Below, in pieces: positions 9,409 to 63,302 of a DNA stretch of 64,000 nt. The translations under genes and the position numbers were made by a program. The notes beneath the pieces were generated by a model. The model saw only the letters and a program-made list of their open reading frames with translations. It did not search any database and was not told where the DNA came from. Source of the DNA: Zygnema circumcarinatum SAG 698-1b (taxonomy: Eukaryota; Plantae; Zygnematophyceae). The stretch is taken from the NCBI GenBank assembly GCA_037447605.1, contig CM074815.1, forward strand, positions 992,001-1,056,000, written 5' to 3'. Within the stretch, counting starts at the first letter, position 1. Each line of letters opens with the position of its first letter.

Positions 9409-10932
9409 CTTCAGGGGAAACCAATTCAACAACCGCCAAGTGGCGTTGGGAAAGGTGCGAACTGCCATGTGCTGAGGAGTCAGCACATGCAGCCCAAGGA
9501 CATGGGAGGTGTTTCCCATGACATGCAAAGCATTCATGGCACATTGCATGAGGACATCATCGCCCATGACATTGAGGATAAAGATATGCCAATCACCATT
9601 CATCACTACTTCCATCAACCCAGAAGGAGTCACTACAGTGGCAGGGGAGAGGGAAATGGAAACAGGGAGGGCATCACACACAAAGAGATCGTGCATTCCC
9701 AAAGGTCTGCGAATCAATTTAAGAATGTCCAAGGTTCTAAGAAACAAATGTCCCCTAGTCCTGGCAGCAGCTTCCATTCTTTCCCCTAACCTAGCATGTC
9801 CACCAGCAGCGACCCCTAAACTGCTGGTGGGTTGGGGTTTTCCGGCCCCTTGCCCTTCTTGTCCTTGGCGTTCAGAGGGCAATCCCGGGCCTTATGCCCC
9901 TCCTTCCTACATCGGAAGCACTTATTCTCCCGCTGCATCCGCTCCATCTCTTCTGGAGTCAACTTCTGTGGCCGTGCAGGGGCTGGGCGGGCAGCCGCTT
10001 CCGGCTGCTTCCGCTTATTCTTTCCTGCCATCTTGGCAGGGGCTGAGGGTCCCGCCTTCCACGACCCCGTCACATCTCCCGACCTCTGCTGGGGCCGGGA
10101 AGGGCCTGCATCGCCTGCAGGGGCGGTGTCNNNNNNNNNNGGATCGGCGGAGTCTGCCGGTTCCAACGGCTCCGGTGGCACGGGAGGGGGGGCAGGATTC
10201 TCCGGATGACCTTGATCACCCGTGGGCTCGAGACTGGGCCCCTCCATGGGGACGGCCGCAGTCTCCGAGTTCTCCTCCATCACCTCATCCCGGGGGACGG
10301 GTGGTGGAGGTGGCGGCCCAGAGGGCCCCGGGTCCCCTCCGGCCCGGCGAGTGGTCACCATGACCAACAGGTCCTCCTTGCAGAGGAAGGCCGCAACGCG
10401 GCTCTGATACCAAATGTCACGTCTGAAAACTGCCTCTTCAGCCATAGGCGGAATAACACTCAAACTGCACTCAGCTGAGCAATCAAGAAAAGAGAGAGAG
10501 AGAGAGAGCTTCAGAGTGGGGAGCAGCCCGGAACGGGCATGCAACCGTATGCCGGTACGTTGGTTGGTTGGCGACAGCCAACCTGCCTCCAATATGCGTT
10601 TCCTCGCTTAACCTACCGCCAAAGATGGGAGGGATTGGAAGTGGCTGCCCAAAGGCAAATTCCGCCACGCAGCACCGCCTCTCAATTCTCAATGTCGAGG
10701 AGTGCAACGTATTTAACGCCGCCGCTGCTTCCTACGGGCCAAGGACGCGCGGGCGCCGTATGCCGGTGCACGTCGGATCCTGGCGCCAAGCAATGCTGGG
10801 TTGATCGGGGATACCGTCTCTGCATTCTCAACTGCACCCTAACCGCATCTGACTTAATCGACAGATTCCAAAGGGGATCAGCCGCGCCCGAGATCCAATC
10901 AGCCGATGGGTCCCAGGGTGCCGCATCCTAAC
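9409..10932 (-). mobile_element. Chromovirus family G 5' fragment: LTR, PBS, gag with zinc knuckle, pre-protease domain
   Basis: LTR from 10415; PBS TGGTATCAGAGC as reverse complement at 10401-10412; gag MVTTRRAG...CFRCRKEGHKARDC; -1 frame ORF 9882-9400. Confidence 0.9.
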
Positions 10933-18136: not shown

Positions 18137-19243
18137 GCTCGACAATTGGTTAAGTTGCCCTCGGCTTCCCATGTGCTATGTTCAACCCCATAGCCCAACC
18201 ATTTCACGAGGTATTCGTGACGGGAAGATCGACCCTTTCTCACAATACGGTGGGCTTGAATGGTTTCAACTTCATAGTCAAGTTCACCTTCAAGTTCCAC
18301 TGGTGGGGGAGGTGGCTGGATCCTCCCATCGCTACGGTAGGCTTTTAGCAATCCCACATGAAAGACCGGATGCACCTTCATATGAGCTGGTAAATCCAAC
18401 CGGTAAGCGACATCATTGATTCGCTTCACGACCTTAAAAGGTCCGATGAAACGGGGCCACAGCTTACGTGTTCCGCCATAAGCCTTGAGTCTCAAGTTCG
18501 CCGTACTTAACAACACCTCATCGCCCTCCTTGAAGGTGAGTTGAGTACGGTGACGGTCAGCATAGGCCTTTTGTCGCGACTGGGCCGCTAGCAGGGTCTG
18601 CCGTGCCCTCTGCAGCGCCTCAGACATTAGCCGGACAAAAGACCTGACTGCGGGAGGTTGAGTCCGATGAGTTCCTCTCAGCTTCCAAGGATCGGGGGTT
18701 CTGTGGACACCCATGTTCCACGGATCAGGGGGCTGATCCCTTGGTTGCAGGGGATTTAGGGGATGCTGACCAAAGTTCAGGAAGAAAGGGGTGGTACCAA
18801 TGGATTCCTGGTAAGCATTATTGATGGCGTATTCAGCCACTGGGAGCAGTTCATCCCACCCATCCGGGGTGGGTCCCACATAATGCCGGAGGTAATCCTC
18901 CAAGATGCTGTTCACCCGTTCTGTCTGGCCATCGGTTTGTGGGTGGAAAGCTGTACTCAATGCCTGCTTGGTCCCCACGATTTTGAGCACTTCCGTCCAA
19001 AAATGGCAGGTGAATCGTGGGTCATGGTCAGACACAATTTCCGACTGAAGACCATGCTGGCTCCACACTGTCAACATACAACCGTGCAATCTCGTCGGCC
19101 CCAGCTGTCTTAGTAGTTGGCGCAAAATGCACCATCTTGTTGAGCCGATCGACGAAGACGAGGATGGAGTCATGCCCTCGAGGTGTCACAGGAAGATCTG
19201 TGATCAAATCCATTCCCACACTGTCCCATTTCCGAAAAGGAGG
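18137..19243 (-). CDS. Integrase C-terminal part plus chromodomain of the outer chromovirus
   Basis: IVSDHDPRF, STAFHPQTDGQTERVN, GPF/Y motif (WPRFIGPFKV), chromodomain YEVETIQAHR..EYLVKWLGYGVEHSTWE. Confidence 0.92.
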
Positions 19244-19889: not shown

Positions 19890-20448
19890 GTAGAGGGTTT
19901 TTAGGGTTTTTAGGTTATAGGTTAAGTTCATGGAGGCGAGTAGTGCTTGGCTTCTGCAGTTGGGGTGTAGGCTATCTATGAGAGGATAGGATAGTGCTCA
20001 TGTGAGGAGGAGAATCTAGCATAAGGGATCTATGTAGATTTCCTCAAGAGCTTGTATTACACTCATGGAGTTTAAGGAGTTTTAGGGCCGTGGGCTTTCT
20101 CCTTACTATTGTATCATCTGTCATGTGAGTCCTCGTGTTGGATTAGCGTGGTGGATGAGTGGAGGCGACCATTGTATGGGCGGTGTGTTGCTCCACACGA
20201 GGAGACCATTGGAGGAGCGTGGAGTTGAGGAGCCGAGACCATGGAGGAGATGAAGAAGTGCACTTGTTGAGGTGGGGTGTTTAGTTTCCGCTGTGCGCAC
20301 CTGGCAAGAGGTGGACGAGAAGGCATATCGTGGCGGAAGCGGTATGTGGCCCAAGGAGAAGAAAAAGGAAAGTTTTGAGCTCTGATACCCAACGCATGTG
20401 TTGCCCTTTCCTTGTGTCTTTCCTTTCTTGCTGCCCCTTGCACCAACA
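19890..20448 (+). repeat. 3' part of family-D LTR interrupting gypsy gag
   Basis: Near-identical to ~47020-47542, ends CACCAACA; gag resumes at 20449 (NWDKFRDEL). Confidence 0.88.
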
Positions 20449-21034
20449 ATTGGGATAAGTTCAGAGATGAACTTATCAAACATTTTGGGTCCCTGGACCC
20501 GGGTTTGGAAGCCAGGGATAAGTTTCAGAACATGGTCCAAATCGGCAGTGTCAAGCAGTTTCTGCGAGACCTGCGTCAAGTGGTGCCTCAAATCACCACA
20601 CACAAGCCTGGACAGGCTGAGTTTTTCTACCACTTCAGGAACGGCTTGAAGCCACACCTGAGGAAGCTGCTAGGGACTAACCCACGGACTCTGAAACCGT
20701 GGGACCCCGCTGACTCTGAGCTGTACTTTGATGCAGCCATTCAGTTGGACACCGCCCCTGCAGCCGATGCAGGACCTTCCCGACCCCAGCAGAGGGCGGG
20801 TGATGTGCAAGGGTCGATGAAGGCGGGACCCTTAGCTCTTGCCAAGCTGGCAGGAAAGACTAAGCGGAAGCAGCCGGAAACGACTGCTCGCCCAGCCACT
20901 GCGAGACCGCACAAGTTGACTCCAGAGGAGATGGAGAAGATGCAGCGGGAGAACAAATGTTTCCGTTGCAGAAAGGAGTGCCACAAGGCCGGTGATTGTC
21001 CTTTGAACACCAAGGACAGGAAGGGCAAGGGGCC

Positions 21035-21078
21035 GGAAAACCCCAACCCACCAGCAGCTTAGGAGTCGTTGCTGGTGG
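21035..21078 (+). promoter_or_regulatory. Predicted -1 ribosomal frameshift signal (gag to pol)
   Basis: Slippery G_GAA_AAC 21035-41 in the gag frame, 6-nt spacer, 11-bp stem CCACCAGCAGC/GTTGCTGGTGG (21048-58, 21068-78); the pol ORF is -1 relative to gag; conserved in the minus-strand copies near 9800-9845 and 34298-34345. Confidence 0.8.
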
Positions 21079-21604
21079 GGAGGATAGGCTAGGGGATAAG
21101 GGAGAAATGGCTGCCATCAGGGTTAGGAAATGGTTGTTCCTTAAAACTCTGAACATTGTGAAATTGATGGGCAGACCTTTTGGAGTGCATGACCTGTTTG
21201 TGTGTAATGCGCTTCCGGATTCCATTTCTCTCTCCCCTGCCACGGTAGTGACTCCTTCTGGATTCATGGGTGTAGTGATGCATGGTCAATGGCATGTCAT
21301 TATCCTCACTGTAATGGGCGATGATGTCTTGGTGGAATGTTCCATGGATGCTTTGCATGTCATGAGGGACACATCCCACATCCTTGGGCTACATGTGCTA
21401 GTTCCTCAGCACATGGCAGTTCGCACCTTTCCCAACGCTACTTGGCGGTTGGTGAAACAGTTGAGGAAAGGGCATCAGGTGGTGCAACTGATGGAAGGAT
21501 CCACCAGTTCGCTGGTTGGATCACCCTACACCTTGGTGTGGAGGTCGGCTTGTCCTCAACCCTCGCATATAGTGCGATCTATGTTCCATCTTGCCCATCG
21601 GGCC
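21079..21604 (+). CDS. Uncharacterised ~170-aa domain at the Pol N-terminus, upstream of the protease
   Basis: Open in the pol frame in three diverged copies (here, 9790-9409, 28935-28490) with many third-position synonymous differences. Confidence 0.8.
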
Positions 21605-24498
21605 ATGACCTTCACCGGGTCAGCCAATGGCCACCCAGCAGTTATACTGCTAGATACTGGGGCGGATGCTAATTTTGTTAGTTCTGCATTCACCCAGAGA
21701 TTTGGGTTGACCACAGGTCCCCATTCAGAAAGTGTTACTTTCGGGGATGGACGCAAGGGCCAGATCTCTGGCATCGTCACACTCAAGATCAAGCTCCAAT
21801 CCTACTCCGGAGCAGTGAAGTGTCTTTTGACACAGCTGGCCCCTGGAACTGATGTTATTTTGGGGAGTGCTTGGATAACCATGGTCAAGGCCCAACTAGA
21901 TTTCTCCATCCCACATTGCATTCTGCACAGTGGTGACAGGCGCATAACCTTGCACCCTGGCAGATCCACATCCACTGTTACCAAACAGTTGGATGACCCT
22001 TATCTCTGTTCGGCCATGCAACTGACCAAAGCAATAAAGGAGGGTTGCACCTTGTTTATGGTGCATGTCATGACAGCCACTGAGGATGTGCATGACGAAG
22101 ATCAAGAATGGCAGATCACACCTACGGATGTGATCTCGGCTGTTCCATCCCAAATCCAACCTCTGTTGGATGAGTTCAGGGATGTCTTCCCTGATGACCT
22201 TCCAAGAGGGTTGCCACCTTCTCGAGGAGTGGGGCATACAATCCCTCTTGAGCCTGAGCAAAAGCCGCCTTGGCGGCCGATCTATCGGTAAAGTCCGAAA
22301 GAAATCGAAGAGATGCGTAAGCAGTTGACTAACTTACGGGACAAGAGAAGATAGAGCCCAGCCAAAGCCCTTTTGGGGCGCCCATCTTGTTTGTAGGCGA
22401 GAAAGATGGCTCGTTGAGGATGTGCATTGATTATCGCGCACTCAACAAAATCACCGTAAAGAATCGATTTGCTTTACCACGTATTGATGATCTTTTGGAT
22501 CGTCTTCACGGCGCCAAAGTGTTTACATCACTTGATCTTGCTCAGGGGTACCATCAAATCCGCGTCACGGAAGCTGATGTGCCAAAGACTGCGTTCCAGA
22601 CGCCGATTGGTCATTTCCAATATAAGGTGTTGCCCTTTGGATTGACTAATGCTCCGGCGACTTTCCAGGCGATAATGAACGAGATGTTCATCTGCATGGA
22701 CGAGTTTGTTTTGGTTTACCTCGATGATATCCTTGTCTTCAGTAAGACAGAGGAGGAACATCTTGAACACGTTCGGAAGGTGTTTGAAACCCTGAGGAAA
22801 CACCAGTTTTATGCCAAGAGGAAGAAGTGTCACTTCATGCAGCGCGAGTTGCTTTATCTTGGGCATATTCTCAATGATCAGGGCCTTCGGCCTGACCCTG
22901 CCAAAGTTTCAGCGGTAGAAACTTGGGCAGAACCAACTGACTTGCATCAGTTGCGATCGTTCTTGGGATTTGCGAATTATTTTCGTAAGTTCATCCAAGG
23001 GTTCAGTAAATTGGTTACTCCCTTGACTAACTTGACACGTTCCGGTGTCCCCTTTGTGTGGACCCCAGAGTGCTAGGAAGCATTCGAGGGTGTATGCCAT
23101 GCACTGGTTACCGCCCTTACACTCCGTTTAGCGGACCCGTCCAAACCATATGAAGTGGTTTGTGATGCTTCGGGATTCGCCTTGGGTGCCGTCTTGTTTC
23201 AAGATGGCCAACCTTTGGCGTATGAAAGTCGCAAAATGAATCCCGCTGAGCGCAACNNNNNNNNNNCTCCGGCATTATGTGGGACCCACACCGGATGGGT
23301 GGGATGAACTGCTCCCAGTGGCTGAGTATGCCATCAATAATGCTTTCCAGGAGTCCATTGGTACCACCCCTTTCTTCTTGAACTTTGGCCAGCATCCTCT
23401 AAATCCCCTGCAACCAAGGGATCAGCCCCCTGATCCGTGGAACATGGGCGTCCACAGAACCCCCGATCCTTGGAAGCTGAGAGGGACTGATGGGACTCAA
23501 CCTCCCGCAGTCAGATCTTTTGTCCGGCTAATGTCCGAGGCGCTGCAGAGGGCACGGCAGACCCTGCTAGCGGCCCAGTCACGACAAAAGGCCTATGTTG
23601 ACCGTCACCGTACCCAACTCACCTTCAACGGCGGCAGTATTTACATTGTATAGCGGCGGGGCTGCAGCTTATGGCCGGAACACGTAATTTGTAGCCCGCT
23701 TCATGGGGCCCTTCAAGGTAAGGCGGCATAAATGGTCAACACGGTTGGATTTGCAGACCATATGAAGGTGCATCCGGTCTTTCATGTGGGATTGCTAAAG
23801 GCCTACCGCAGCGATGGGAGGATCCAGCCACCTCCCCCACCAGTGGAACTTGAAGGTGAACTTGAGTATGAAGTTGAAACCATTCAAGCCCACCGTATTG
23901 TGAGAAAGGGTCGATCTTCCCGTCACGAATACCTCGTGAAATGGTTGGGCTATGGGGTTGAACATAGCACGTGGGAAGCCGAGGGCAACTTGACCAATTG
24001 CCAAGAGCTCATNNNNNNNNNNGTTCGTACAATTACGGGTGACCGTTGGTACGGACGGACTGACAGTCGGACCCCGCGCCGCGCGCGTAGGATCCGGCCG
24101 TGCACCGACGTACGGCGGCGCGCCGCGTCGCGGCGCGCGCCCGCGGAACGCGGCGAGCGTTCGTACGTTGCACTCCTCTGACCCATTCGGGTCAGACACG
24201 GACACGTGGCGGGTTGCCACTTGACAGCCCTGCTTCCAATCCTCCATGCTGGTAGGAGGTTCAACGGGGGAAGCATATAGGGGCGAGGTTGGCTGTCGCC
24301 AACAAAACCAACGTACCGGCATTTGGTTGCACCCCTGCCCAGGGCTGCGCCTCTCTCTGAAGCACTCTCTTTTTCTCCTGTTTTCTTGATTGCTCGGCTG
24401 AGTGCAGACTGAGCGTATTCCGCGCATGACCGAGGAGGGATTAGCCCCGCGGTCGTTACAGGAGGTGTGAGGGGTTGCAGCTGGCCAGGAATCTTGCC

Positions 24499-27400
24499 AG
24501 TGCGGGGTTTGTTTCGTTGACAAGGTGGACAAGCGAGTACATACGCTTTCACGTCCCTCGAGAGTCCAGGCCACCAGAACTCTCGGAGCAGTGCCTCACG
24601 GGTTTTGGCAACTCCCATGTGACCTCGGTACGGAGGATCATGTAGCTCACTCAGAATGAGCTGCCGTACAGTCCCGGCCTTGGGCACGACCAACTGCTGG
24701 CCGTGGTACCAGAATCCGCCCTTAGACACCACTTTGTCCTTATAGCCATTACCTTGGCCATCCAAGAACAAAGGATTCACCAGCGTACCCCTCCTGAATC
24801 ATCTGTCTGAGATCAGAGAGAGCAGAAGGGTTGACTGCGTCACTGGTGGAGGGATCTATGACAAAGCATGCTGGAGACGGAGACTCGGGGTTGGCCAGCC
24901 CCTCACCTCTGTCATCTCGTTCCACCAACACTCGAGTCGACGAGCGCACCATCCAGGCAAGATGCCGAGGCTGCTTGCTTAGTGGGTCTGCTACATTCAG
25001 CCTTCCGGGCCGATAAACCCACTGGCAATCAAACCTTTGGAGGAACTCAGACCAGCGTGCCTGCCGCCTAGACAGGGTCTGTTGGGTTGAGAGGAACGTC
25101 AGCGGCCGGTGGTCAGTGACCAGCGTGACCACTTTCGCCCCCTCCAAATAGCACCGCCATGTCCTCAGGGCGTGAACAACTGCAAGCAATTCCTGTTCTG
25201 TTGCAGAATAGTTGCGCTCAGCGGGATTCATTCTGCGACTTTCATACGCCAAAGGTTGGCCATCCTAAAACAAGACGGCACCCAAGGCGAATCCCGAGGC
25301 ATCACAAACCACTTCATAAGGCTTGGACGGGTCCGCTAAACGGAGAGTGGGCGCGGTAACAAGTGCATGGCGCACGCCCTCGAATGCTTCCTGACATTCA
25401 GGGGTCCATGCAAAGGGGACACCGGAACGTGTCAAATTAGTCAAGGGAGTAACCAATTTACTAAACCCTTGGATGAACTTACGAAAATAATTCGCAAATC
25501 CCACGAATGATTGCAACTGATGTAAGTCAGTCGGTGCTGCCCAAGTCTCTACCGCAGACACTTTGGCAGGGTCTGGCCAAAGGCCTTGATCATTCAAAAT
25601 ATGCCCAAGATAAAGCAACTCAGGTTGCATGAAATGACACTTTTTTCTCTTGGCATAAAACCGGTTCGTCCGGTGTACCTCAAACACTTTCCGAACGTGT
25701 TCAAGATGTTCCTCCTCTGTCTTACTGAAGACAAGGATATCATCAAGGTAAACCAAAACAAACTCGTCCATGCCGATGAACATCTCGTTCATTACAGCCT
25801 GGAAAGTCGCCGGAGCATTAGTCAATCCAAAGGGCAACACCTTATATTGGAAATGACCAATCGGCGTCCGGAACGCAGTTTTTGGCACATCAGCTTCCGT
25901 GACGCGGATCTGATGGTACCCCTGAGCAAGATCAAGTGAAGTAAACACTTTGGCTCCGTGAAGACGATCCAACAAATCATCAATACGTGGTAAAGCAAAG
26001 CGATTCTTTACGGTGATTTGGTTGAGTGCGCAGTAATCAATGCACATCCTCAACGAGCCATCCTTTTTGCCAACAAACAAGATGGGCGCCCCAAAAGGGN
26101 NNNNNNNNNTGCCAGTGCGGGGTTTGTTTCGTTGACAAGGTGGACAAGCGAGTACATACGCTTTCACGTCCCTCGAGAGTCCAGGCCACCAGAACTCTCG
26201 GAGCAGTGCCTCACGGGTTTTGGCAACTCCCATGTGACCTCGGTACGGAGGATCATGTAGCTCACTCAGAATGAGCTGCCGTACAGTCCCGGCCTTGGGC
26301 ACGACCAACTGCTGGCCGTGGTACCAGAATCCGCCCTTAGACACCACTTTGTCCTTATAGCCATTACCTTGGCCATCCAAGAACAAAGGATTCACCAGCG
26401 TACCCCTCCTGAATCATCTGTCTGAGATCAGAGAGAGCAGAAGGGTTGACTGCGTCACTGGTGGAGGGATCTATGACAAAGCATGCTGGAGACGGAGACT
26501 CGGGGTTGGCCAGCCCCTCACCTCTGTCATCTCGTTCCACCAACACTCGAGTCGACGAGCGCACCATCCAGGCAAGATGCCGAGGCTGCTTGCTTAGTGG
26601 GTCTGCTACATTCAGCCTTCCGGGCCGATAAACCCACTGGCAATCAAACCTTTGGAGGAACTCAGACCAGCGTGCCTGCCGCCTAGACAGGGTCTGTTGG
26701 GTTGAGAGGAACGTCAGCGGCCGGTGGTCAGTGACCAGCGTGACCACTTTCGCCCCCTCCAAATAGCACCGCCATGTCCTCAGGGCGTGAACAACTGCAA
26801 GCAATTCCTGTTCTGTTGCAGAATAGTTGCGCTCAGCGGGATTCATTCTGCGACTTTCATACGCCAAAGGTTGGCCATCCTAAAACAAGACGGCACCCAA
26901 GGCGAATCCCGAGGCATCACAAACCACTTCATAAGGCTTGGACGGGTCCGCTAAACGGAGAGTGGGCGCGGTAACAAGTGCATGGCGCACGCCCTCGAAT
27001 GCTTCCTGACATTCAGGGGTCCATGCAAAGGGGACACCGGAACGTGTCAAATTAGTCAAGGGAGTAACCAATTTACTAAACCCTTGGATGAACTTACGAA
27101 AATAATTCGCAAATCCCACGAATGATTGCAACTGATGTAAGTCAGTCGGTGCTGCCCAAGTCTCTACCGCAGACACTTTGGCAGGGTCTGGCCAAAGGCC
27201 TTGATCATTCAAAATATGCCCAAGATAAAGCAACTCAGGTTGCATGAAATGACACTTTTTTCTCTTGGCATAAAACCGGTTCGTCCGGTGTACCTCAAAC
27301 ACTTTCCGAACGTGTTCAAGATGTTCCTCCTCTGTCTTACTGAAGACAAGGATATCATCAAGGTAAACCAAAACAAACTCGTCCATGCCGATGAACATCT

Positions 27401-27720
27401 CGTTCATTACAGCCTGGAAAGTCGCCGGAGCATTAGTCAATCCAAAGGGCAACACCTTATATTGGAAATGACCAATCGGCGTCCGGAACGCAGTTTTTGG
27501 CACATCAGCTTCCGTGACGCGGATCTGATGGTACCCCTGAGCAAGATCAAGTGAAGTAAACACTTTGGCTCCGTGAAGACGATCCAACAAATCATCAATA
27601 CGTGGTAAAGCAAAGCGATTCTTTACGGTGATTTGGTTGAGTGCGCAGTAATCAATGCACATCCTCAACGAGCCATCCTTTTTGCCAACAAACAAGATGG
27701 GCGCCCCAAAAGGGCATTGG
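24499..27720. repeat. Apparently identical ~1.6-kb tandem duplication across a 10-N gap
   Basis: 24499-26098 repeats at 26110-27720 (offset ~1615) with identical ORF translations; probably unmerged contig overlap. Confidence 0.85.
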
Positions 27721-28935
27721 CTGGGCTCTATCCAGCCTTTCTCCCGTAAAGCAGCCAATTGCTTTCGCATCTCTTCGGTTTCCTTCGGACTTAACCGATA
27801 GATCGGTCACCAAGGCGGCTTTTGCTCAGGCTCAAGAGGGATCGTGTGCCCGACTCCTCGAGACAATGGCAACCCTCTTGGGAGGTCATCAGGGAAAACA
27901 TCCCTGAACTCATCCAACAAAGGTTGGATTTTGGGTGGAACGGCCAAGAGCACATCCGTAGATGTGATCTGCCATTCCTGATTTTCGTCATGCACATCCT
28001 CAGTGGCTGCCATGACATGCACCATAAACAAGGTGCAACCCTCCTTAACAGCTTTGGCCAAGTGCATGGCCGAGCAGAGATAAGGAGTATCAACCTGCGT
28101 GGTAGCAATGGTGGTGGATTTGCCAGGGTGCAGTGTGATGCGCCTATCACCGCTGTGCAGAATGCAGTGTGGGATGGAGAAATCCAATTGGGCCTTGACC
28201 ATGGTTAACCAAGTACTCCCTAAAATAACATCCGTTCCAAGGGCCAGTTGTGTCTGAAGACACTTCGCTGCCCCGGAATAGGATTGGAGCTTGATCTTGA
28301 GTGTGACGCTACCAAAGATCAGGCCCTTGCGTCCATCCCCAAAAGTAACGCTTTCTGAATGGGGGTCTGTGGTCAATCCAAATCGTTGAGTGAACGCAGA
28401 ACTAACAAAGTTAGCATCTGCCCCAGTGTCCAGCAGTATAACTGCTGGATGGCCATTGGCTAACCCGGTGAAGGTCATGGCATGATGGGCTAGATGGAAC
28501 ATGGATCGCACTACATGCGAGGGTTGAGGACGAGCCGTCCTCCACACCAAGGTGTAGGGTGATCCAACCAGCGAACTGGTGGATCCATCCATCATTTGCA
28601 CCACTTGATGCCCTTTTCTCAACCGTTTCACCAACCACCAAGTGGCGTTGGGGAAAGTGCGAACTGCCATGTGCTGAGGAACCAGCACATGCAGCCCAAG
28701 GACATGGGAGGTATTTCCCATGACATGCAAAGCATCCATGGCACATTGCATGAGAACATCATCACCCATGACATTGAGAATGGACACATGCCACTGGCCA
28801 CGCATCACTATATCCAGAAACTCAGAAGAAGTCACCACACTGGTTGGGGGAAAAGACATGGAATCTGGGAGCGCATTACACACAAAGAGATCATGCATTC
28901 CCAAAGGTCTGCCCATCAATTTAAGAATGTCCACG

Positions 28936-34227: not shown

Positions 34228-36421
34228 CCACGGTCCTAAGAAACACTAGTCTCCTAACCTTGATGGCAGCCCTATTCCCTTCCCCTAGCCTAACATCTCC
34301 ACCAGCAACGACTCTTATACTGCTGGTGGGTTGGGGTTTTCCGGCCCCTTGCCCTTCTTGTCCTTGGCGTTCAGAGGGCAATCCCGGGCCTTGTGCCCCT
34401 CCTTCCTACATCCCGGAGGCCCCTTGTTCACCCATTGCATCGCTCCATCTCTTCAGGAGTCAACTTTTGTGGCGGGCGAGTGATTCGGTGCTTTAAACAC
34501 GATTTCTTTCTACTTGGGTTTGGCGGGAGGAGGGTCCGCCTTCCGCGACCTGTCACATCTCCGACCTCTATGCGAAGGGTCGGGCGGGGAACTACCGCTG
34601 CGGTGTCAAGCCGGGTATTTTGCATTAAAGTCTGACTGATGTGTGGGGGTCCCGCGGTTTTAGAGTGAGTGGGTTGGTCGCATACTTGCCTCTTGGGTTG
34701 TGGCTTCAAGCCATTCACGGAAGTGGAAAAAGAGCTACGGCACAGCTAGGCTTGTGGGTGGTGATTTGTGGCACCACCTGACGCAGGTCTCGCAGAAACT
34801 GCTTGACGCTGCCGGTTTGGACCATGTTCTGAAATTTATCCCGGGCCTCCAATCCGGGATCCAGGGCCCCAAAGTGTTTGATAAGTTCATCTCTAAACTT
34901 ATTCCAATCGTCCCCAATCTCATCAGAGAGGCCCTCATACACACGGTATGCGGCTCCTCTGAGTGTTGGGTAAGCAAAGCTTACCCACTGGAGGGGGGGA
35001 CAGTTGGTCGCAAGAAGGTAACCCTTCGTTTGACCCAACCACTGCTCGATGGAGCAGTCCGTGGTAGGATGTTCACCCCAAAAGGAGAGCGGGGCTACCT
35101 TCGCTCGATTCCGTTTGGCATCCTCAGTGGGTTCGCGAAGGGGCGGCCAGGCGGGATCTCCTCCACTTCCAGCGGTTGCGGTGAAGTGCGCGGCTGGTTA
35201 AGCCACCAGGAGAGTGGCTCCCCCGTGGAAGCGGTATGTGAGACCTCTGCGAGCGCTTCCGGTCGGTAGAGGCGTCGGGGAAAGAAGGACAGCGACGAGG
35301 TGTGTTTCTAACCCCATCCCGGGGTCTGGCATCTCTTTGCCTCTACAACACAGAGTTCGAGAACTTACCTTCTAGCCGATGACCGGAGCCTCTCGCCGGG
35401 CCTGAGCTTCCATGCGGAGGCGTATCCACCAGCAAGCGGACCGTTAGCTCCATGTCATCCACCTTCCGCGAGCAAGCCATGGTGGAGACGTTAATCCGAG
35501 TCACCTCCTTCCTCAGATCTTCGATCCTCGTCCTCATCTTCTGGGCCGCGCCCACCGTGATGTGGGCCCCGATCATGGGATCGGACCCAGCCATAGCCGC
35601 TACCGGAGCCGATGGCTCCGGTTGGGGAGGGGGTGGTGTGATATTCTCCGGATGACCTTGGTCATCCGTGGGCTCGGGACTGGGCCCCTCCATGGGGACG
35701 GTCGATCTCCTTCTCCTCATACTCGTCCGTAGGACGGTGGTGAAGGTAAGCGTGAGGCCCGGTCTCGGCCGGCGGTGATGCCGCGGCCCACTACGTCTTT
35801 TTCCCAAAACGAAAGCTTGCCCATAGCGGCGGCTCGATACAAATGTCGCGGCGAAATCTCGCCCCTTCCAACCCGTCTTGCTTGAGAATTGCACTAAGTT
35901 TGCACTTTCGAGGATTAGGCAAAGAGAGCTTTAGAGAATAGCGGCCACAGGCATCCGCATGCGATACGTTGGTTGGGTGACGGCTTGATCCCACGCCCTT
36001 ACGCTTCCCGTTGAACCTCCTACGGCATGGAGAGTTGGAAGCGGTACGTCAATGGCGGCTGCCCGCGTGTCCTCTCGGCCGAATGGGTGAGGTGTACAAC
36101 ATCACCCGAGCGCTCCGCGTAGCGGCGCCGCCGCGGCAGCGCTTGCCGCCCATGCGTCGGTATACGGTGGTCCGGATCCTACAGCGCCTTGGCCTTGAGC
36201 CCGGCCCGGCGTTCCGTCGTACCAGCGGTAGCCGTTATGCGGACGGCGATTCACGTTCCAAAACGTTACAAACCCTTACGACTTCCGCAAGGTTCGATCC
36301 TAAGACCTACCAGGTCCTAAGTGGTCCCCGGCGCCTTGACCACTCGGCCGCGCCGAGTGAGGAAGTACTACAGAGTCGCCCTTGGAAATTACCTCAGTAG
36401 GCGGCGTAGCGTTTTGCTCTG

Positions 36422-52933: not shown

Positions 52934-54845
52934 ATGTCCACAGAAATGCTACCAACTGAGTATGAGACCCGCGATGAGCTTATACAAGTCATGACCGAGC
53001 ACTACAAGCACGAAGGATTTCACATCAAGATCGGTCCACATGGCGATAGTCGCCGATTCTACCTACAATGCTTGAGCGGGGGAACCTACAGGGATAAAGG
53101 TCAAGACGAGAGCAGCAAGAAGAGGCATACCTCTAGCCGCTTAAAAAATTGCCCTTTCAAGATCAAGGCAACGTTTTCTAAGAAGAAGAACATGTGGGCT
53201 GTAAAATCCATCGTTGAAGAGCACAACCACGTCATTTCAAGTGGATATGCCGAGAATAGGCGCTTGAATACTCGCAAAAAGGAATGTGTTCGAGAGATGG
53301 CACAAAACGGCGCTAGCATTCCATCCATAATGTCTACCCTTCAAAACCAGTACGGGAACCAGCATACGACCAAAAGAGTAGTGTACAATGAGACCGCTGC
53401 AATGAGGACAGATTTCTTGGCTGGTCGAACCCCCATTGTAGCCTTAATTGAAACTCTAAGTGCTGGCAATTTCATCTTTGAAGTTAGTTATGGGATCGAC
53501 GGCGCTGTTACAGGTTTGTTCTTTACTCACCGGGATTCAGCAAAGCTTGCGAATGAGTACAACAATGTCTTCGTAATGGATGCAACTTAAAAGACAAACC
53601 GATTTGGAATGCCTTTGCTGAACATTGTTGGGATAACTGCCACTTATTCGACTTTTAATGCTGGATTTGCGTTTTTACGGGAAGAAACGAAGGAGGCATA
53701 CGTTTGGGCCTTGCAAGCATTCCGCGCTGTGGTAACACCTAAGCTTATCGCTACTGATCGTGAACTAGCGTTGATGAACGCGATCTCAGAAGTCTTCCCT
53801 GACACTGTGAATGTTTTGTGTGTATGGCACGTTAATAAGAACGTGCTTGCAAACACTAAGAAGCATTTCGAGGACAATAATGAGTTTGAGATATTTATGA
53901 AGATGTGGAATGCGTGTTTATATTCCACTACAGAAGAAACTTATCATGGCAATTGGGCAGCGATGGAGAGTTACTCTAGCTCACCGGAATGGACGGCTGC
54001 CCTTCACTATGTGTCAAGATGGTGGCAAGAGCATCGGGACAAGTTCGTTAGATGTTTTGTCGACAAGAACATGCACTTGGGAACGGGTTCTACATCTCGT
54101 GGGGAGGGAAACCATCATCTCCTAAAGCGATACATCCAAATTCCAACTCTTGATTTACTTACAGTTTTCCAACGGCTAAATCTGATGCTCCAAACCCAGT
54201 TTGTCGAGCTTAAGCAGATGATTGAAGCTGAGAAGATTTTGATTTGTCTTCATCACAAGAAGCCGTATTTGGAAGAACGCATGGGCCTGTAGTTCAAAGT
54301 TTGCATTCGCAGTTGCATAATATGAAGGAGAAATTTTGGCAAGCGACAACGTTGGGGCCCTTGTGGTGGGTATTTACTTCAGGGGGCTCCCTTGTAAACT
54401 TATCGCATTTCGAGCCCGATCTTGACGGAGGGAGAAAATCTTACTTACAGGACATCAATCGTGATAGTGGTTAGACCAAGAGTTTTATCAAGTCCAAAGA
54501 AGCCGACCACAATTCCACAGTTGGATCATCGTCGCATTCCGCGGCCCGGGCAATGACAATCCAGGCATTAACAACCCGAGGGTTGTTTGCAAATGATTCT
54601 TCGTAACATTGGTCGCTAGCGTCTCAAGTAAGATGAACTTTTGGCTGAACCCTTTCGCGGTTGCAAAGGCCCCCGCAGGTTACAAAGAAGCGAGGTGCGA
54701 CAACCTACTAGTTACTTGCGTGGTTTGTAATCCCAGCGGGACAGAGCCATTTTGAGGTATCTTGAGAGGTAACAAATGTTCTGAATTGTATGGCTTAACC
54801 CGGGGCCACAACTCAGGGGGCACTAGTGAAGAAAAGCAATGCTTT
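52934..54845 (+). pseudogene. MULE (Mutator-like, FAR1-type) transposase
   Basis: N-terminal C...CPF...W...HNH domain; catalytic region MDAT*KTNRF (TAA 53588-90 at the consensus Tyr), ATDRELALMNAI, LCVWHV, TSRGEGNH; same frame to 54292; degraded GLPCKH and a C..C...GHNS knuckle downstream; TIRs not visible. Confidence 0.88.
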
Positions 54846-58560: not shown

Positions 58561-58991
58561 GCGAAAGAGAGACTGCGCATGTGAGAGAGTTCAGGAAGGT
58601 CTGTGCAGGAAGAGAAGTGTCAGGCGGAGGAGAAGCGTCTGGCGAAGCGTCGCAAATGTATGGTGCTCAAGAAGGAGGATTCAGAAAGGAGAATTCTGGA
58701 AGCTTCGACATTGGGTAGAAAAGAAGCGCTGCGCAGATGTAGAACACAGTGAAGAGAGAACAGGAAGAGAGAAGAGAGGATGAAGTGATCTGTAATGAGG
58801 CCTCATATGAAATAAAGAAGTGTTTATGAGTTGTGTGTTGATCTTGTGAGAACATGTGTTTTGTATGTCAAGCTTGAATGTGTTCTCTTCTGTCACAATG
58901 TGGTATCAGAGCTGAGTGATTGAAAGCTGGTTGATAATTTATTGAGAGAGCAAGTGAGTAAGCAAGTGAGTGATTCTGAGTGAGATCGAAA

Positions 58992-61900
58992 ATGAGTAAG
59001 CGGAGTGATGAAGGGAAAATATTCTTCGATGGAACTAACTATGCAGCATGGGAGATATTCGCGAAGATCAAGCTGCAGAAGAAAGGATGCTGGAAAATCG
59101 TGGAAGGTACATCTGCTAAACCAGCGGCGGCAGGACCAGAGTTGGAGAAATGGCAGGAATTAGACGATGAGGCAAAATATCAGATTGCTAGCTTAGTAGA
59201 TAAGAAGCATCTTATTCTGCTAGGGGGCAAGGATACTGCGAAGGAGATGTGGGATAAGTTAAAGGAGATTTATTTGAAGAAGTCTATGGCTGTGAGAAAT
59301 TCCCTCTGGACAGAATTGACGACCTTAAGTCTATCAAGGAGAGAGTCAATAGATGAGTTTATTTTAAGATTTGAAGTTCTGGTAAGACAGTATGAGGATG
59401 TAGGGGGAACTATCTCTGAGGAACAACAGGTCCATACGATCTTACGGTGTTGTGAAGAGAGAGCCTCCAGAGATGTCGGGAACATAAAAACTCAACAGTT
59501 GAGCGATGTAGAGTCAGTGAAAGCTATTTTAAGGGCAGCAGAATCTGAGCAGAACGATAAGCAGAGGTTTCAGAAGTTCATAGGTCATAGGCCTCAGACT
59601 AGTGAGGCCTTCCACAGTCAAAGCGGAGATGAGGATGGAGGAGAACAGGTGGAAGCCTACGCAGCCAACTACAGAGGCAGAGGACGTGGAGCAAGAGGGG
59701 GTGCCTTCCGTGGAGGTCCATCGTTTGGACGAGGACGCACAGGTCAGGCCCAGGCCCAGCAGGCAGCATGTTTCAATTGTGGAAAACCTGGACATCTTGC
59801 CAAGGATTGCTGGAGCAGTTCAAGGAGTTCTGGAGCAGGAAATGGTGCAGCTACCGGAAGAGGCGTTTGGAGAGGCGATAGTGGACAGAATGAAGACACA
59901 AGAGGAGAAGGATGTTTTGTGTGTGGAAAGCCAGGTCATTTTGCTCGGGATTGCTTTCATAAACCGCAAGGTAGAGGAAGAGGCGGCTATGGTAGAAGAG
60001 GCGGCATTAGAGGACTTGCAGCTTCAGTAAGAAATCCTCAAGGAGGTGCAGAGGAAGATGAGGAGTCAGCTTATCGTTTGGAGGAGAAGGAGCAACGTGC
60101 AGATTGGATAGTGGATAGTGGCGCATCACATCATATTTGTGCAAATAGAGACGAATTTGTGGAGATGAGGAAATTGGCAGTTCCAAAGATCCTTCGGACA
60201 GCCAATGGAGGAGAGGAGATCGTGGATGAAGTCGGGACAGTGAAGCTGAATTTGATAATGCGACCACAACAAGAGGAAGTACTCGTTTCAGAGGTCATGT
60301 ATGCTCCAAGCCTTGAAAAGAACCTAATGTCAGTGAGGCAGCTTGCTAGAAATGGCATGAATGTTAATTTCTTTGGAGATAGATGCATAGTGAGAAGGCC
60401 AAATGGGCACTTGGCTTTGGAGGCATATGATGATGGGAATCTCTACAGAGTTAGATGTGCAAGAGGCAAGAAAGGAAGGAATTTTATAGAGTCACATGTG
60501 TTGAGAGCATACGCTGCAGATGCTGATTTATGGCACAGGAGGTTAGGCCATCTCAGTTGGAGGTCGTTAGTAGCAATGAGTAAGAAGGAGATGGTGGCAG
60601 GATTGGAGGCTTTGAGCAGTAAGGAAATGCAGCATAGTTGTAAAGGATGTGAGGAAGGGAAACTAAAGCAGAAAGCATTAAAGCGGCTGGATGAGACCAT
60701 TCGAACAAGGAAACGATTGGAGCTTGTGCACATGGATGTGTGCGCATCAGATGTAGAGAGCATTGGCGGCAATCATTATTTCCTTACTATTGTTGATGAC
60801 TACAGCAGGAAAGTTTGGGTGCGGATGATCCGGCATAAGCATGAAGTCTTCAAAGCTTTTCTGGGCTGGAAAGCAATGGTGGAGAGAGAGAGTGGAGAGT
60901 TAGTGAAAAGGATAAAGACTGACAATGGGGGCGAATTCAAAAACAGGAGTTTTGAACAGATGTGTGCAGAGACAGGTATAAGGCAGGCATTCACTGCCCC
61001 TTATACACCGCAGCAAAATGGAGTTGCAGAGAGGATGAACAAGTCCCTCATGGACATTGCAAGGTGCAACCTGGTGGAGAGTAATCTTCCAGAAAACCTC
61101 TGGGCTGAAGCAGTCACTGCAGCAGCCTACATCAAGAACAGGAGCTACAACTCTTTGCTGAAGGAGCAGACTCCACAAGAAAGGTGGGCAGGTTCAAAGC
61201 CCAATATTTCTCATCTTAGAGTGTGGGGGAGTAGGTGTACTGTTTGGATCCCTCAACATCAGAGAAGTTGGAAGATGGCAGCTAGAGGGAGAACAGGTTT
61301 TATGGTTGGCTATAGCCGGGACAGTTACCAGTACAGGATTTATGACCCTCAGATGCAGCAGGTTATCACGAGCAGAAATGTGCAGTTCTATGAGGATGAG
61401 TATATTCAGAAGGAGGACAGGCAGCAGCCAAGGAGATTCAGTTATCAGCCCGCAGATGATAGTGATGAGGAGGACACAGATGAGAGTGATGATGAAGAGA
61501 CACCAAGGAAGTCAGCAAGGAAGGAGACAAGACCAGTGGAGACAGCGCAGGAGGAGCAGCCTCAAAGGGAGACAAGAGGAGATTCCAGCGCAACAGAATT
61601 GAGGAGATCAGAGAGACCAAAGAAGCCGATAGTGAAGTTGACATCAGACAGAATTGGAGAACTACATATGGCTGAGGAGAAGAAAGGAGGGAGACATAGA
61701 CTTTCAATTGGGACAATTTATTGCAATCAGGTGGTAATTGGAGAACCACAGAGTTATCAAGAAGCTTTGGAAGGAGAAGATGGAGAGAAGTGGAAAGGAG
61801 CAATAGATAGTGAGTGGAACAGCTTGTTGGAGAACAAAACTTGGACTTTGGAGGAGTTGCGAGAAGGGAGGACAGCAATTGGCGCTAAATGGGTGTTCAA

Positions 61901-63302
61901 GAAGAAGCTGAAGTCAGATGGAAGCATTGAGAGATACAAGGCCAGATTAGTTGCCAAGGGATATAGTCAGATTGAAGGGATTGATTTCACAGAGACTTTT
62001 GCTCCAGTAGTGAAGATAGAGAGCTTGAGGAGCATGTTAGCTATTGCAGCTGAGAAAGGATGGCACATTCATCAGATGGATGTGAAGACAGCCTTTCTGA
62101 ATGGAGAATTAGAGGAGGAGATATTCATGGAGCAGCCAGAAGGAAAGGTGGAGCCAGGAAAGGAAAATTTAGTTTGCAGGTTGAAGAAATCCATCTATGG
62201 ACTGAAGCAAGCTCCAAGGCTTTGGTATGAGAAGCTTCATCAAGTGTTGTTGAAGGAGCAATGTGAGAGGTTTGATTCAGATCATTCAGTTTACAGAAGA
62301 GGAGTTGGTGAGAAAATGGTTGTTATTGGTGTGTATGTGGATGACTTGGTCATTGCTGGACCAAGCTTGCAGGAAATCAAGAAGCTGAAGAAGACTTTGA
62401 TGAGACACTTTAAAATGTCTGACTTAGGGGAAGCTGAATACATTCTTGGTATCCAGATTCAGAGGGGGACAGATGGATCTATATTTATGAATCAGAGGAA
62501 GTACATGGGGGAGATCTTGGAGAAATTCGAAATGAAGGATGCTAAACCAGTGAGTACCCCATTAGATGTGAGTGTGAAGTTGACAAGTGAAATGTGTCCC
62601 AGGACTGAGAGAGAAAGGGAGTACATGAAGGGGGTCCCTTATAGATCAGCAGTAGGAAGTCTGATGTATCTCATGACTTCTACCAGACCAGATCTTGCAG
62701 CGGCTGTTGGAATGCTGAGCAGGTTTCTGAATGATCCAGGAAAGGCGCATTGGGAAGCAGTGAAGAGAGTCATGCGCTATGTGAAGGGGACTTTGGATAC
62801 AGGATTGAAGTTCCAGAAGATTGAAGGAGAGCCAACAGTGATTGGCTATTGTGATTCAGATTGGGGAGGATGTGTTGATACAGGCAGAAGCACCAGTGGA
62901 TATATCTTTGTTTGTGCAGGAGCAGCGATTTCATGGAACAGCAAACTTCAGGAGTGTGTGGCGTTGAGCAGTGCAGAAGCTGAGTACATGGCGGCGTGTC
63001 ATGCAGCGAAAGAAGCTAAGTGGCTGCAGCAGTTGTTTGCAGAGTTGAAGGAACCGCAGCCAAAGTTATTAATGTGGAGTGATAGTCAGAGTTGCATTGC
63101 TTTAGTTAAGAACCCAGTTTATCACAAGAGGACAAAGCATATAGATTTGAAGTATCATTTCATTCGTGAGTTAGTGACCAAGAAGGAGATTGAGCTGAAA
63201 TATGTTCATACGACTGAGCAGGCAGCTGATATGATGACTAAGGCAGGGACAGGACCAATGATTGGTAGATGTTGCAGACTTGTAGGTTTGATGAGTGCTT
63301 GA
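58992..63302 (+). CDS. gag-pol: Copia Gag-Pol polyprotein (1436 aa from the first ATG)
   Basis: Two CCHC knuckles, protease WIVDSGASHH, integrase (LVHMDVC, KTDNGGEF, NGVAERMN), RT (GVYVDDL), RNase H (GYCDSDWGG, TKHIDLKYH, QAADMMTK); no stops. Confidence 0.97.
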   Translation: MSKRSDEGKIFFDGTNYAAWEIFAKIKLQKKGCWKIVEGTSAKPAAAGPELEKWQELDDEAKYQIASLVDKKHLILLGGKDTAKEMWDKLKEIYLKKSMAVRNSLWTELTTLSLSRRESIDEFILRFEVLVRQYEDVGGTISEEQQVHTILRCCEERASRDVGNIKTQQLSDVESVKAILRAAESEQNDKQRFQKFIGHRPQTSEAFHSQSGDEDGGEQVEAYAANYRGRGRGARGGAFRGGPSFGRGRTGQAQAQQAACFNCGKPGHLAKDCWSSSRSSGAGNGAATGRGVWRGDSGQNEDTRGEGCFVCGKPGHFARDCFHKPQGRGRGGYGRRGGIRGLAASVRNPQGGAEEDEESAYRLEEKEQRADWIVDSGASHHICANRDEFVEMRKLAVPKILRTANGGEEIVDEVGTVKLNLIMRPQQEEVLVSEVMYAPSLEKNLMSVRQLARNGMNVNFFGDRCIVRRPNGHLALEAYDDGNLYRVRCARGKKGRNFIESHVLRAYAADADLWHRRLGHLSWRSLVAMSKKEMVAGLEALSSKEMQHSCKGCEEGKLKQKALKRLDETIRTRKRLELVHMDVCASDVESIGGNHYFLTIVDDYSRKVWVRMIRHKHEVFKAFLGWKAMVERESGELVKRIKTDNGGEFKNRSFEQMCAETGIRQAFTAPYTPQQNGVAERMNKSLMDIARCNLVESNLPENLWAEAVTAAAYIKNRSYNSLLKEQTPQERWAGSKPNISHLRVWGSRCTVWIPQHQRSWKMAARGRTGFMVGYSRDSYQYRIYDPQMQQVITSRNVQFYEDEYIQKEDRQQPRRFSYQPADDSDEEDTDESDDEETPRKSARKETRPVETAQEEQPQRETRGDSSATELRRSERPKKPIVKLTSDRIGELHMAEEKKGGRHRLSIGTIYCNQVVIGEPQSYQEALEGEDGEKWKGAIDSEWNSLLENKTWTLEELREGRTAIGAKWVFKKKLKSDGSIERYKARLVAKGYSQIEGIDFTETFAPVVKIESLRSMLAIAAEKGWHIHQMDVKTAFLNGELEEEIFMEQPEGKVEPGKENLVCRLKKSIYGLKQAPRLWYEKLHQVLLKEQCERFDSDHSVYRRGVGEKMVVIGVYVDDLVIAGPSLQEIKKLKKTLMRHFKMSDLGEAEYILGIQIQRGTDGSIFMNQRKYMGEILEKFEMKDAKPVSTPLDVSVKLTSEMCPRTEREREYMKGVPYRSAVGSLMYLMTSTRPDLAAAVGMLSRFLNDPGKAHWEAVKRVMRYVKGTLDTGLKFQKIEGEPTVIGYCDSDWGGCVDTGRSTSGYIFVCAGAAISWNSKLQECVALSSAEAEYMAACHAAKEAKWLQQLFAELKEPQPKLLMWSDSQSCIALVKNPVYHKRTKHIDLKYHFIRELVTKKEIELKYVHTTEQAADMMTKAGTGPMIGRCCRLVGLMSA

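Follow-up and report, generated by a model that had tools for sequence, protein, structure and literature searches.

What lies between Gag and protease in a retrotransposon of the alga Zygnema circumcarinatum SAG 698-1b, and why has it been kept? The question is raised by a window of 64,000 nucleotides, the whole stretch of DNA analysed here (assembly GCA_037447605.1, contig CM074815.1, positions 992,001 to 1,056,000 of the forward strand), whose first letter is position 1 in all coordinates below. The window carries copies of a Ty3-type chromovirus, and in the pol frame of this element 175 residues stand before the protease. The explanation that we consider probable is that these residues are a decayed domain of the Dam type (N6-adenine methyltransferase), carried in the chromovirus Gag-Pol polyprotein, which has lost its catalytic motif and is selected for a non-catalytic role. 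A decayed methyltransferase of this type had been suggested in an earlier note, made from the letters of the window alone; the suggestion now finds support of moderate strength, by way of intermediate sequences, in a profile of related elements, in a comparison by hhalign, in the position of the domain and in a model of its fold. The region and its copies are located as follows.

21080 to 21604, plus strand: pre-protease region of 175 residues, probably a decayed Dam-like methyltransferase domain (judged by its coding signature, profile, hhalign and model); the modelled alpha/beta core covers residues 18-161, about 21131-21562.
21308 to 21319, plus strand: residues T77-V78-M79-G80, opposite catalytic motif IV (NPPF in the relative P0122), as placed by MAFFT and hhalign in agreement.
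28479 to 28934, minus strand: second copy of the domain, without its first 23 residues, continuing into protease and reverse transcriptase (RT) (tblastn, 79% amino-acid identity).
9424 to 9798, minus strand: third copy, cut off past residue 125, with the gag end and the gag/pol junction upstream to 10130 (tblastn, 72.6% identity).

The size of the insertion follows from a single distance. The last Cys of the zinc knuckle in Gag and the catalytic Asp of the protease stand 218 residues apart; in P0153, a fern chromovirus related to the element, the same interval is about 45 residues, which leaves an excess of about 170, as the earlier note had held. Its start had been put at 21079, which is one base off and gives stops, since the codon frame begins at 21080; the peptide quoted for it is nonetheless the one read by the open reading frame (ORF) at 20996-22291. 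Three diverged copies are indeed present, at coordinates close to, and not equal to, those first given for the two on the minus strand, which run from 28934 to 28479 and from 9798 to 9424. The element family stands at thousand-fold summed depth in public runs of the same organism (four runs of assembled contigs, in which depth is no measure of expression). In the contigs of three DNA runs, the summed depth at 80% likeness over 21105-21230 lies 10- to 100-fold below that of gag, of the protease and of the remaining domain; copies across the genome thus differ far more in this N-terminal third than in those parts.

The region is coding sequence and not a spacer, a claim already made from its synonymous changes. 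The pol frame alone is free of stops in all three copies (over 175, 152 and 125 codons in copies 1 to 3), the other five frames holding 1-15 stops each, and the copies differ most at third codon positions and least at second ones, with pairwise differences at positions 1/2/3 of 22/8/37, 27/12/32 and 16/6/22. For the three pairs of copies, the ratio of non-synonymous to synonymous change (dN/dS, NG86 method) takes values of 0.27, 0.40 and 0.50 in the Dam-like part; a ratio near 1 would have spoken against function, and the region is under selection. The lowest values, 0.11-0.12, are found in the middle of the domain. For comparison, dN/dS is 0.12-0.19 in the protease and 0.20-0.25 in the linker behind it. 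The excess of synonymous change is clearly significant for copies 1 and 2 (binomial p 1e-5 to 3e-4).

The catalytic motif has been lost. The pattern [DNSH]PP[YFW], whose absence had been remarked on from the start, is found nowhere in the domain, and TVMG occupies the aligned position. What this position may once have held is indicated by related elements, for which the entry route was a search with the whole ORF, by way of the flanking protease, that gave 33 proteins. P0122 (also L007), from a metagenome of the Joint Genome Institute (JGI), has 231 residues before its protease, in which CWFNPPFG is intact. It matches the Pfam Dam family PF05869 at E 3.2e-4 as a whole protein and at E 4.7e-5 when the domain is taken alone (20.9 bits, under the gathering score of 28.1). 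The earlier note had proposed a search of algal Ty3 elements for relatives retaining NPPF, and P0122 is such a relative.

From P0122 the family can be followed outwards. Scanning metagenomes with its domain gives three long polyproteins (L008-L010) in which a homologous domain lies immediately before the protease (tblastn E 1e-13 to 5e-8; at 120-635, 220-726 and 305-769, respectively) and motif IV reads LYPE or LHPP. The domain is also present in every contig of the further RT relatives L012-L015, where a profile of L007-L010 matches it at E 5.6e-18 to 4.4e-4; at motif IV these have ISTP, LNAV, INAK or LHPA. Most of the metagenomic relatives that have the domain have lost NPP[FY]. In an element of Closterium sp. 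NIES-54 (GCA_949281255.1; L003/L004 3942-4478), the pre-protease region of L003 scores 20 bits against the enlarged profile of relatives and has CDHHNL in the region of motif IV, which makes it a degenerate Dam-like domain in a streptophyte alga; the corresponding region of L005 scores 7.7 bits. The RTs of the relatives are 49-62% identical to that of the window element, and the RT tree unites the window element and the Dam-domain relatives, which are spread across the sub-clades, in one algal chromovirus clade (SH-aLRT 99). Wherever significant hits were obtained among the related algal chromoviruses that were sampled, a Dam-like domain stands directly before the protease. L008 and L009, with LYPE at motif IV, are intact over 1470 residues, and their domain has a dN/dS of about 0.16, at which dS is saturated.

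The chain of homology thus runs from Dam to P0122, on to L008-L010 and L012-L015, then to L003 and L005, and finally to the window domain, the last link being modest. This link is made by a profile of 11 rows drawn from the relatives, with no rows from the window and with frameshifted relatives entered as separate pieces. Copy 1 scores 9.4 bits and copy 2 scores 7.9 bits, and none of 1000 composition-preserving shuffles of either reaches its score. When all six frames of the window are scanned, the two domain ORFs rank first and second among 686 segments, at E 0.19 and 0.7. When the three copies are compared with the eleven relatives by hhalign, 104 columns align colinearly at P 0.0071; MAFFT, run unsupervised, likewise gives a colinear alignment along the whole length, beginning at the N-terminal L.G..F..D block and ending at the C-terminal strand. 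Judged by the significance of the profile and hhalign comparisons and by the identical position and length, common descent of the window domain with the Dam-like domain appears likely.

AlphaFold of the single sequence gives an unusable model (pLDDT 32.6). AlphaFold2 was given a 15-row MAFFT alignment that includes Dam-like relatives, and the resulting model has pLDDT 64 and pTM 0.60, with pLDDT 74-83 over residues 60-130. Strands and helices alternate in the model and a beta meander follows at the end; TVMG falls right after a central strand (E73-78) and before helix H81-97, where motif IV belongs. Foldseek finds nothing at E 1e-3 or better, and its top 50 matches (E 2e-3 to 5e-2) are almost all S-adenosylmethionine (SAM) methyltransferases, including HemK, M.BceJIV, CcrM, RlmJ and PCIF1. 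VIA-align, run against 48,161 representatives, places the adenine-N6 methyltransferases KsgA, DIMT1 and Erm at the top (best Z 7.1, root-mean-square deviation 3.8-3.9 over 123-126 residues), with E. coli Dam at Z 5.3 and methyltransferases in most of the top 50 rows. A search of the ESM Atlas by shape finds, amid generic methyltransferase clusters, a chlorophyte cluster in which 75% of members carry PF05869 (TM 0.52 over 127 residues). The model is consistent with a class-I methyltransferase-like fold and is not proof of one; the structural comparison that the earlier note had proposed does return matches of the methyltransferase type, at middling scores and with relatives in the alignment from which the model was made. 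Kinship with the Dam-like domain has moderate support, and so, within these limits, has the putative fold.

How the domain would be made can be read from the junction of gag and pol, for which four further features are needed.

20412 to 21062, plus strand: gag ORF, with a capsid-type domain and a CCHC zinc knuckle (Pfam Retrotrans_gag E 4.4e-6; CFRCRKECHKAGDC is visible in the translation); stop codon TAG at 21060-21062.
20996 to 22291, plus strand: first ORF of the pol frame, comprising the overlap with gag, the pre-protease domain, the protease and the linker to RT (ORF translation and Pfam).
21033 to 21079, plus strand: candidate -1 frameshift signal, with slippery A AAC CCC at 21038-21044 followed by a 12-bp stem-loop at 21047-21079 (conservation and RNA fold).
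21617 to 21874, plus strand: retropepsin core, catalytic DTG at 21653-21661 (Pfam gag-asp_proteas, Asp_protease_2 and RVP_2).

The Pfam matches to the protease cover residues 208-309 of the ORF at 20996-22291, at E 3e-7 to 1e-5. Pol lies at -1 relative to the gag frame, and the two frames stand in the same relation in all three copies. A 16-mer at 21033-21048 recurs without change at 9830-9845 and at 34329-34344 (both minus strand), one of the copies being only about 75% identical elsewhere; three such matches occur in none of 100 shuffles. The stem-loop belongs to a fold with a minimum free energy of -33.4 kcal/mol (z -2.2), and among the copies its arms are invariant, every change falling in the loop. 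The segment is probably a -1 frameshift signal, and expression by -1 frameshifting is likely because the slippery-site 16-mer is identical among copies and is followed by a stem-loop with invariant arms. The domain would then be made only when ribosomes shift by -1 at the end of gag, and would therefore be present at Pol stoichiometry.

A number of results weigh against a Dam-type ancestry under selection, and have to be set beside those above. The domain itself matches nothing in Pfam to E 10 (all three copies, Dam PF05869 included), in a sequence search of the PDB, or by HMMER against 1.84 billion protein representatives (0 matches); a scan of metagenome contigs with the domain and a word-indexed homologue search restricted to it likewise give nothing. 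Features from the ESM Atlas reach 0.81 at best, with viral polymerase fragments, which is the noise level stated for the tool. Among PDB sequences the relatives' profile finds PCIF1 as its best match, at a non-significant E of 1.2. Compared pairwise with P0122, the domain gives z of about 0; with a profile restricted to the first four relatives, its score is equalled by 7-21% of shuffles; and the first hhalign run gave P 0.57. Copy 3 ends directly before the part that matches best and does not score against the profile. The positive scores are small and were reached after several versions of the profile, at a cost in multiple testing; we therefore put their real significance at roughly 1e-3 to 1e-2. 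The fold model is not independent of the hypothesis, its alignment containing Dam-like relatives, and Z scores of 5-7 are in the common range of the tool. Selection is estimated from three copies, with two of the three pairs only marginally significant. Finally, L001, the closest relative by RT (67% identity), has an open stretch of 178 residues before its protease (1155-1688) that has no match of any kind, the window domain and the Dam-like profile included; replacement instead of decay is therefore a possible history of the window domain as well, and the L001 stretch itself reflects either extreme divergence or replacement. L001 and L002 were both tried as bridge sequences and set aside, the first for matching nothing and the second for being decayed.

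Several of these points are what would be expected of a rapidly evolving transframe spacer peculiar to this lineage, which never had a methyltransferase ancestor and is selected only as the N-terminal flank of the protease (in the timing of activation, for example, as in the HIV p6*/transframe region), its likeness to Dam being due to chance and to a shared position. HIV p6* and the betaretroviral dUTPase are made only in a frameshifted precursor and adjoin the protease, and neither has a methyltransferase fold; the window domain resembles both in lying next to the protease and, as predicted, in being made by frameshifting only. The absence of significance from every direct comparison of the domain, an equally long stretch in L001 that is unrelated by every test, an N-terminal third (21105-21230) far more diverged by read depth than the remainder, and the middling scores of the fold matches all favour such a spacer. 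Chance and position would nonetheless have to explain why a profile built from relatives only places two copies above all 1000 shuffles and at ranks 1-2 of 686 real segments, why hhalign, agreeing with MAFFT on the register, reaches P 0.0071, why the fold matches are almost exclusively methyltransferases, a chlorophyte PF05869 cluster among them, and why a Dam-like domain stands at exactly the same place in every other sampled sub-clade. We regard a spacer of this kind as unlikely. A dUTPase is rejected as the identity of the domain, which has no match to it; some of the window element's relatives do have a dUTPase, but after the protease. In four of the protease relatives (P0127, P0132, P0139 and P0140) the dUTPase follows the protease directly, at Pfam E 1e-26 to 1e-32.

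The region might instead be a relic in decay, without present function, in which the constraint derives from recent common ancestry or from neighbouring signals such as the frameshift structure and the protease N-terminus. Its catalytic and flanking motifs are gone, its dN/dS exceeds the value for the protease, and for two of the three pairs the ratio is only marginally under the neutral value, as such a relic would require. It has, however, stayed free of stops over 175, 152 and 125 codons while other frames have gathered up to 15, and its lowest dN/dS (0.11-0.12) is found mid-domain, far from both the frameshift signal and the protease. The intact relatives with degenerate motifs show a dN/dS of about 0.16 in the domain over a saturated dS, and the length of the domain is conserved across the clade. 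A functionless relic is thus improbable.

More doubtful again is the idea that the domain is still an active methyltransferase whose catalytic loop is non-canonical. The fold seems, in the model, to have been kept, and constraint on the domain is strongest in the core, around the former motif IV; against this, TVMG has none of the features of an Asn/Asp-Pro-Pro-aromatic loop, no SAM-binding signature can be recognized, and canonical eukaryotic DAM domains, which have a conserved Asn-Pro-Pro pocket, gave no gain of N6-methyladenine (6mA) in E. coli according to a recent preprint (bioRxiv 10.64898/2026.05.21.726589). We give this alternative very little credence. That the domain is a decayed internal copy of the element's RT or protease can be dismissed: three weak colinear segments in BLASTP against the RT (E 0.18, 0.25 and 57), z of about 3 for two copies under lenient gap costs and the faint pointer of ESM features to polymerase fragments (0.81) are outweighed by an RT profile (103 rows: the window RT and 102 hits) that scores the domain within the range of shuffles, by an hhalign P of 0.29 in which a different region is aligned, by a second copy with no signal against its own RT and by a BLASTP match to the protease of only six residues. 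The profile and hhalign results rule out the RT as the source of a decayed copy; a duplicated retropepsin, which had been considered for a likeness seen by eye (VIILTVMGDD and VILLDTGADA, with ILG motifs), falls with the six-residue match.

The explanation that we prefer, a decayed Dam-type domain, can now be stated as a mechanism. The domain would be a translated part of Gag-Pol in a very high-copy chromovirus, and would descend from a PF05869-like N6-adenine methyltransferase domain that lay directly before the protease in the algal chromovirus clade. An alpha/beta methyltransferase-like fold and the length of the domain would have been kept, while the NPP[FY] loop became TVMG. With that loop replaced and the flanking signature residues mostly gone, the domain is predicted to be unable to methylate; with a dN/dS of 0.27-0.5 here and of about 0.16 in intact degenerate relatives, it has most likely been kept for a non-catalytic role. 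Two versions of this role carry about equal weight. In the first, the domain may act as a scaffold that binds nucleic acid or a cofactor, in the manner of METTL14 and DNMT3L; in the second, it may form an N-terminal structural flank that controls the folding and release of the protease.

METTL14 and DNMT3L are pseudo-methyltransferases in which the fold has been kept under selection after the loss of catalysis, and which serve as binding or scaffolding partners. They are alike to the window domain in the working model, that of a selected methyltransferase fold without catalysis, and differ from it in being host proteins with known active partners; the inactivity of METTL14 is noted in PMC4738411. 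A more specific proposal, which we hold to be speculative and rather unlikely, is that of a working pseudo-methyltransferase. Carried with Gag-Pol into the particle or pre-integration complex, the domain might bind new complementary DNA (cDNA), RNA:DNA hybrid or SAM, or might recruit the adenine-methylation machinery of the host (of the AMT1/MT-A70 type) or readers of 6mA chromatin, such that new insertions would be treated as active chromatin without an enzyme of the element's own. If this were true, algal chromoviruses, including those of streptophyte algae, would hold a large unseen class of DAM derivatives that are invisible to Pfam.

Three further known systems are close to this one. The block order of Pfam PF05869, as seen in P0122 (L.G, F.LD, strand and motif IV, hhVP, LLKQ..R.F and YY.PP), is followed colinearly by the window domain, whose modelled fold is compatible with it; the window domain differs in having no match to the hidden Markov model (HMM) of the family, no NPP[YF] and other residues in most of the signature positions. 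In DIRS1 elements, a methyltransferase domain related to PCIF1 is present, all copies have been judged likely to be inactive, and a binding role has been proposed (Iyer et al. 2016, PMC4738411). DIRS1 and the window element are alike in having a Dam/PCIF1-like domain inside a retrotransposon polyprotein; DIRS1 differs in using a tyrosine recombinase and in having no protease-adjacent placement, whereas the window element, a chromovirus, has its domain between Gag and protease.

DAM domains in long terminal repeat (LTR) retrotransposons were first reported in May 2026, including a chromovirus-like clade of chlorophytes (Fernandez-Moreno et al., bioRxiv 10.64898/2026.05.21.726589). In the available text of this preprint, such DAM-LTRs are described as absent from Streptophyta, gag and protease are unmentioned, and words in 'degenerat' are applied only to orphan remnants consisting of DAM alone. 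The chlorophyte clade and the window element are both chromodomain-bearing and of the Ty3 type, both occur in green algae and both have a prokaryote-derived Dam-like domain in pol, and the RT of the window element falls in a clade with those of elements that carry this domain; they differ in that the elements of the preprint were found by a DAM profile, whereas the window domain is invisible to Pfam and has TVMG in place of Asn-Pro-Pro. If a DAM-LTR is defined, as in the preprint, by a profile-detected DAM in or next to an LTR-element ORF, the window element falls outside the definition and qualifies only as a degenerate derivative. The window element is, in this sense, a derived-state member of the recently described DAM-LTR kind, in which the domain lies between Gag and protease, escapes Pfam, has lost its motif and is still selected. 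Set against the text of the preprint that was available, the degenerate motifs in most metagenomic relatives and the degenerate domain in the streptophyte Closterium element are new.

The remainder of the host element is found further along the same copy and in its neighbours.

22387 to 23076, plus strand: RT of the same copy, downstream of an in-frame stop at 22289-22291 (ORF translation with YLDD).
23732 to 24010, plus strand: integrase end with chromodomain (translation).

The RT is 92.6% identical to that of copy 2, in which ORFs for RT, RNase H and integrase can be recognized; these three parts and a chromodomain follow in this copy and in its inverted neighbour. A further copy of the chromodomain, at 18139-18384 (minus strand), is 97.6% identical to 23732-24010, and its ORF has the Pfam domains SH3_Tf2-1 and Chromo. 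Since RT, RNase H, integrase and chromodomain lie downstream, the element is a chromovirus of the Ty3 type; together with gag and protease, all the parts of such an element up to the C-terminal chromodomain are present, without any single copy in the window being intact. Within copy 2, a direct repeat of 1605 bases (24495-26099 and 26110-27714) has 100% identity and a run of N at its junction, which appears as XXXX in the ORF translations; it is probably an artefact of assembly or scaffolding.

The window as a whole is a dense patchwork of transposon fragments. Eight other long ORFs were compared with Pfam, of which six are transposon-derived (copia, Mutator-like element (MULE) and chromovirus) and two have no match; no host gene family is matched by any long ORF of the window tested in this way. 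An unbroken ORF of 1440 residues at 58980-63302 (plus strand) is of the copia type, and a fragment of a MULE transposase lies at 53609-54292 (plus strand).

What the finding means depends on the decayed Dam-type domain being the correct explanation. If it is, the domain persists after the loss of its chemistry, both in a high-copy family and in several intact relatives, which would point to a non-catalytic use and would match the proposal of inactive binders made for DIRS1. Because the window domain is invisible to Pfam, a screen with a Dam profile is blind to versions such as this one; censuses based on profiles would then undercount these elements, and may wrongly call them absent from streptophyte algae. 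The motif-intact and motif-lost elements would also form a natural set in which to ask whether 6mA at insertions needs an enzyme of the element's own.

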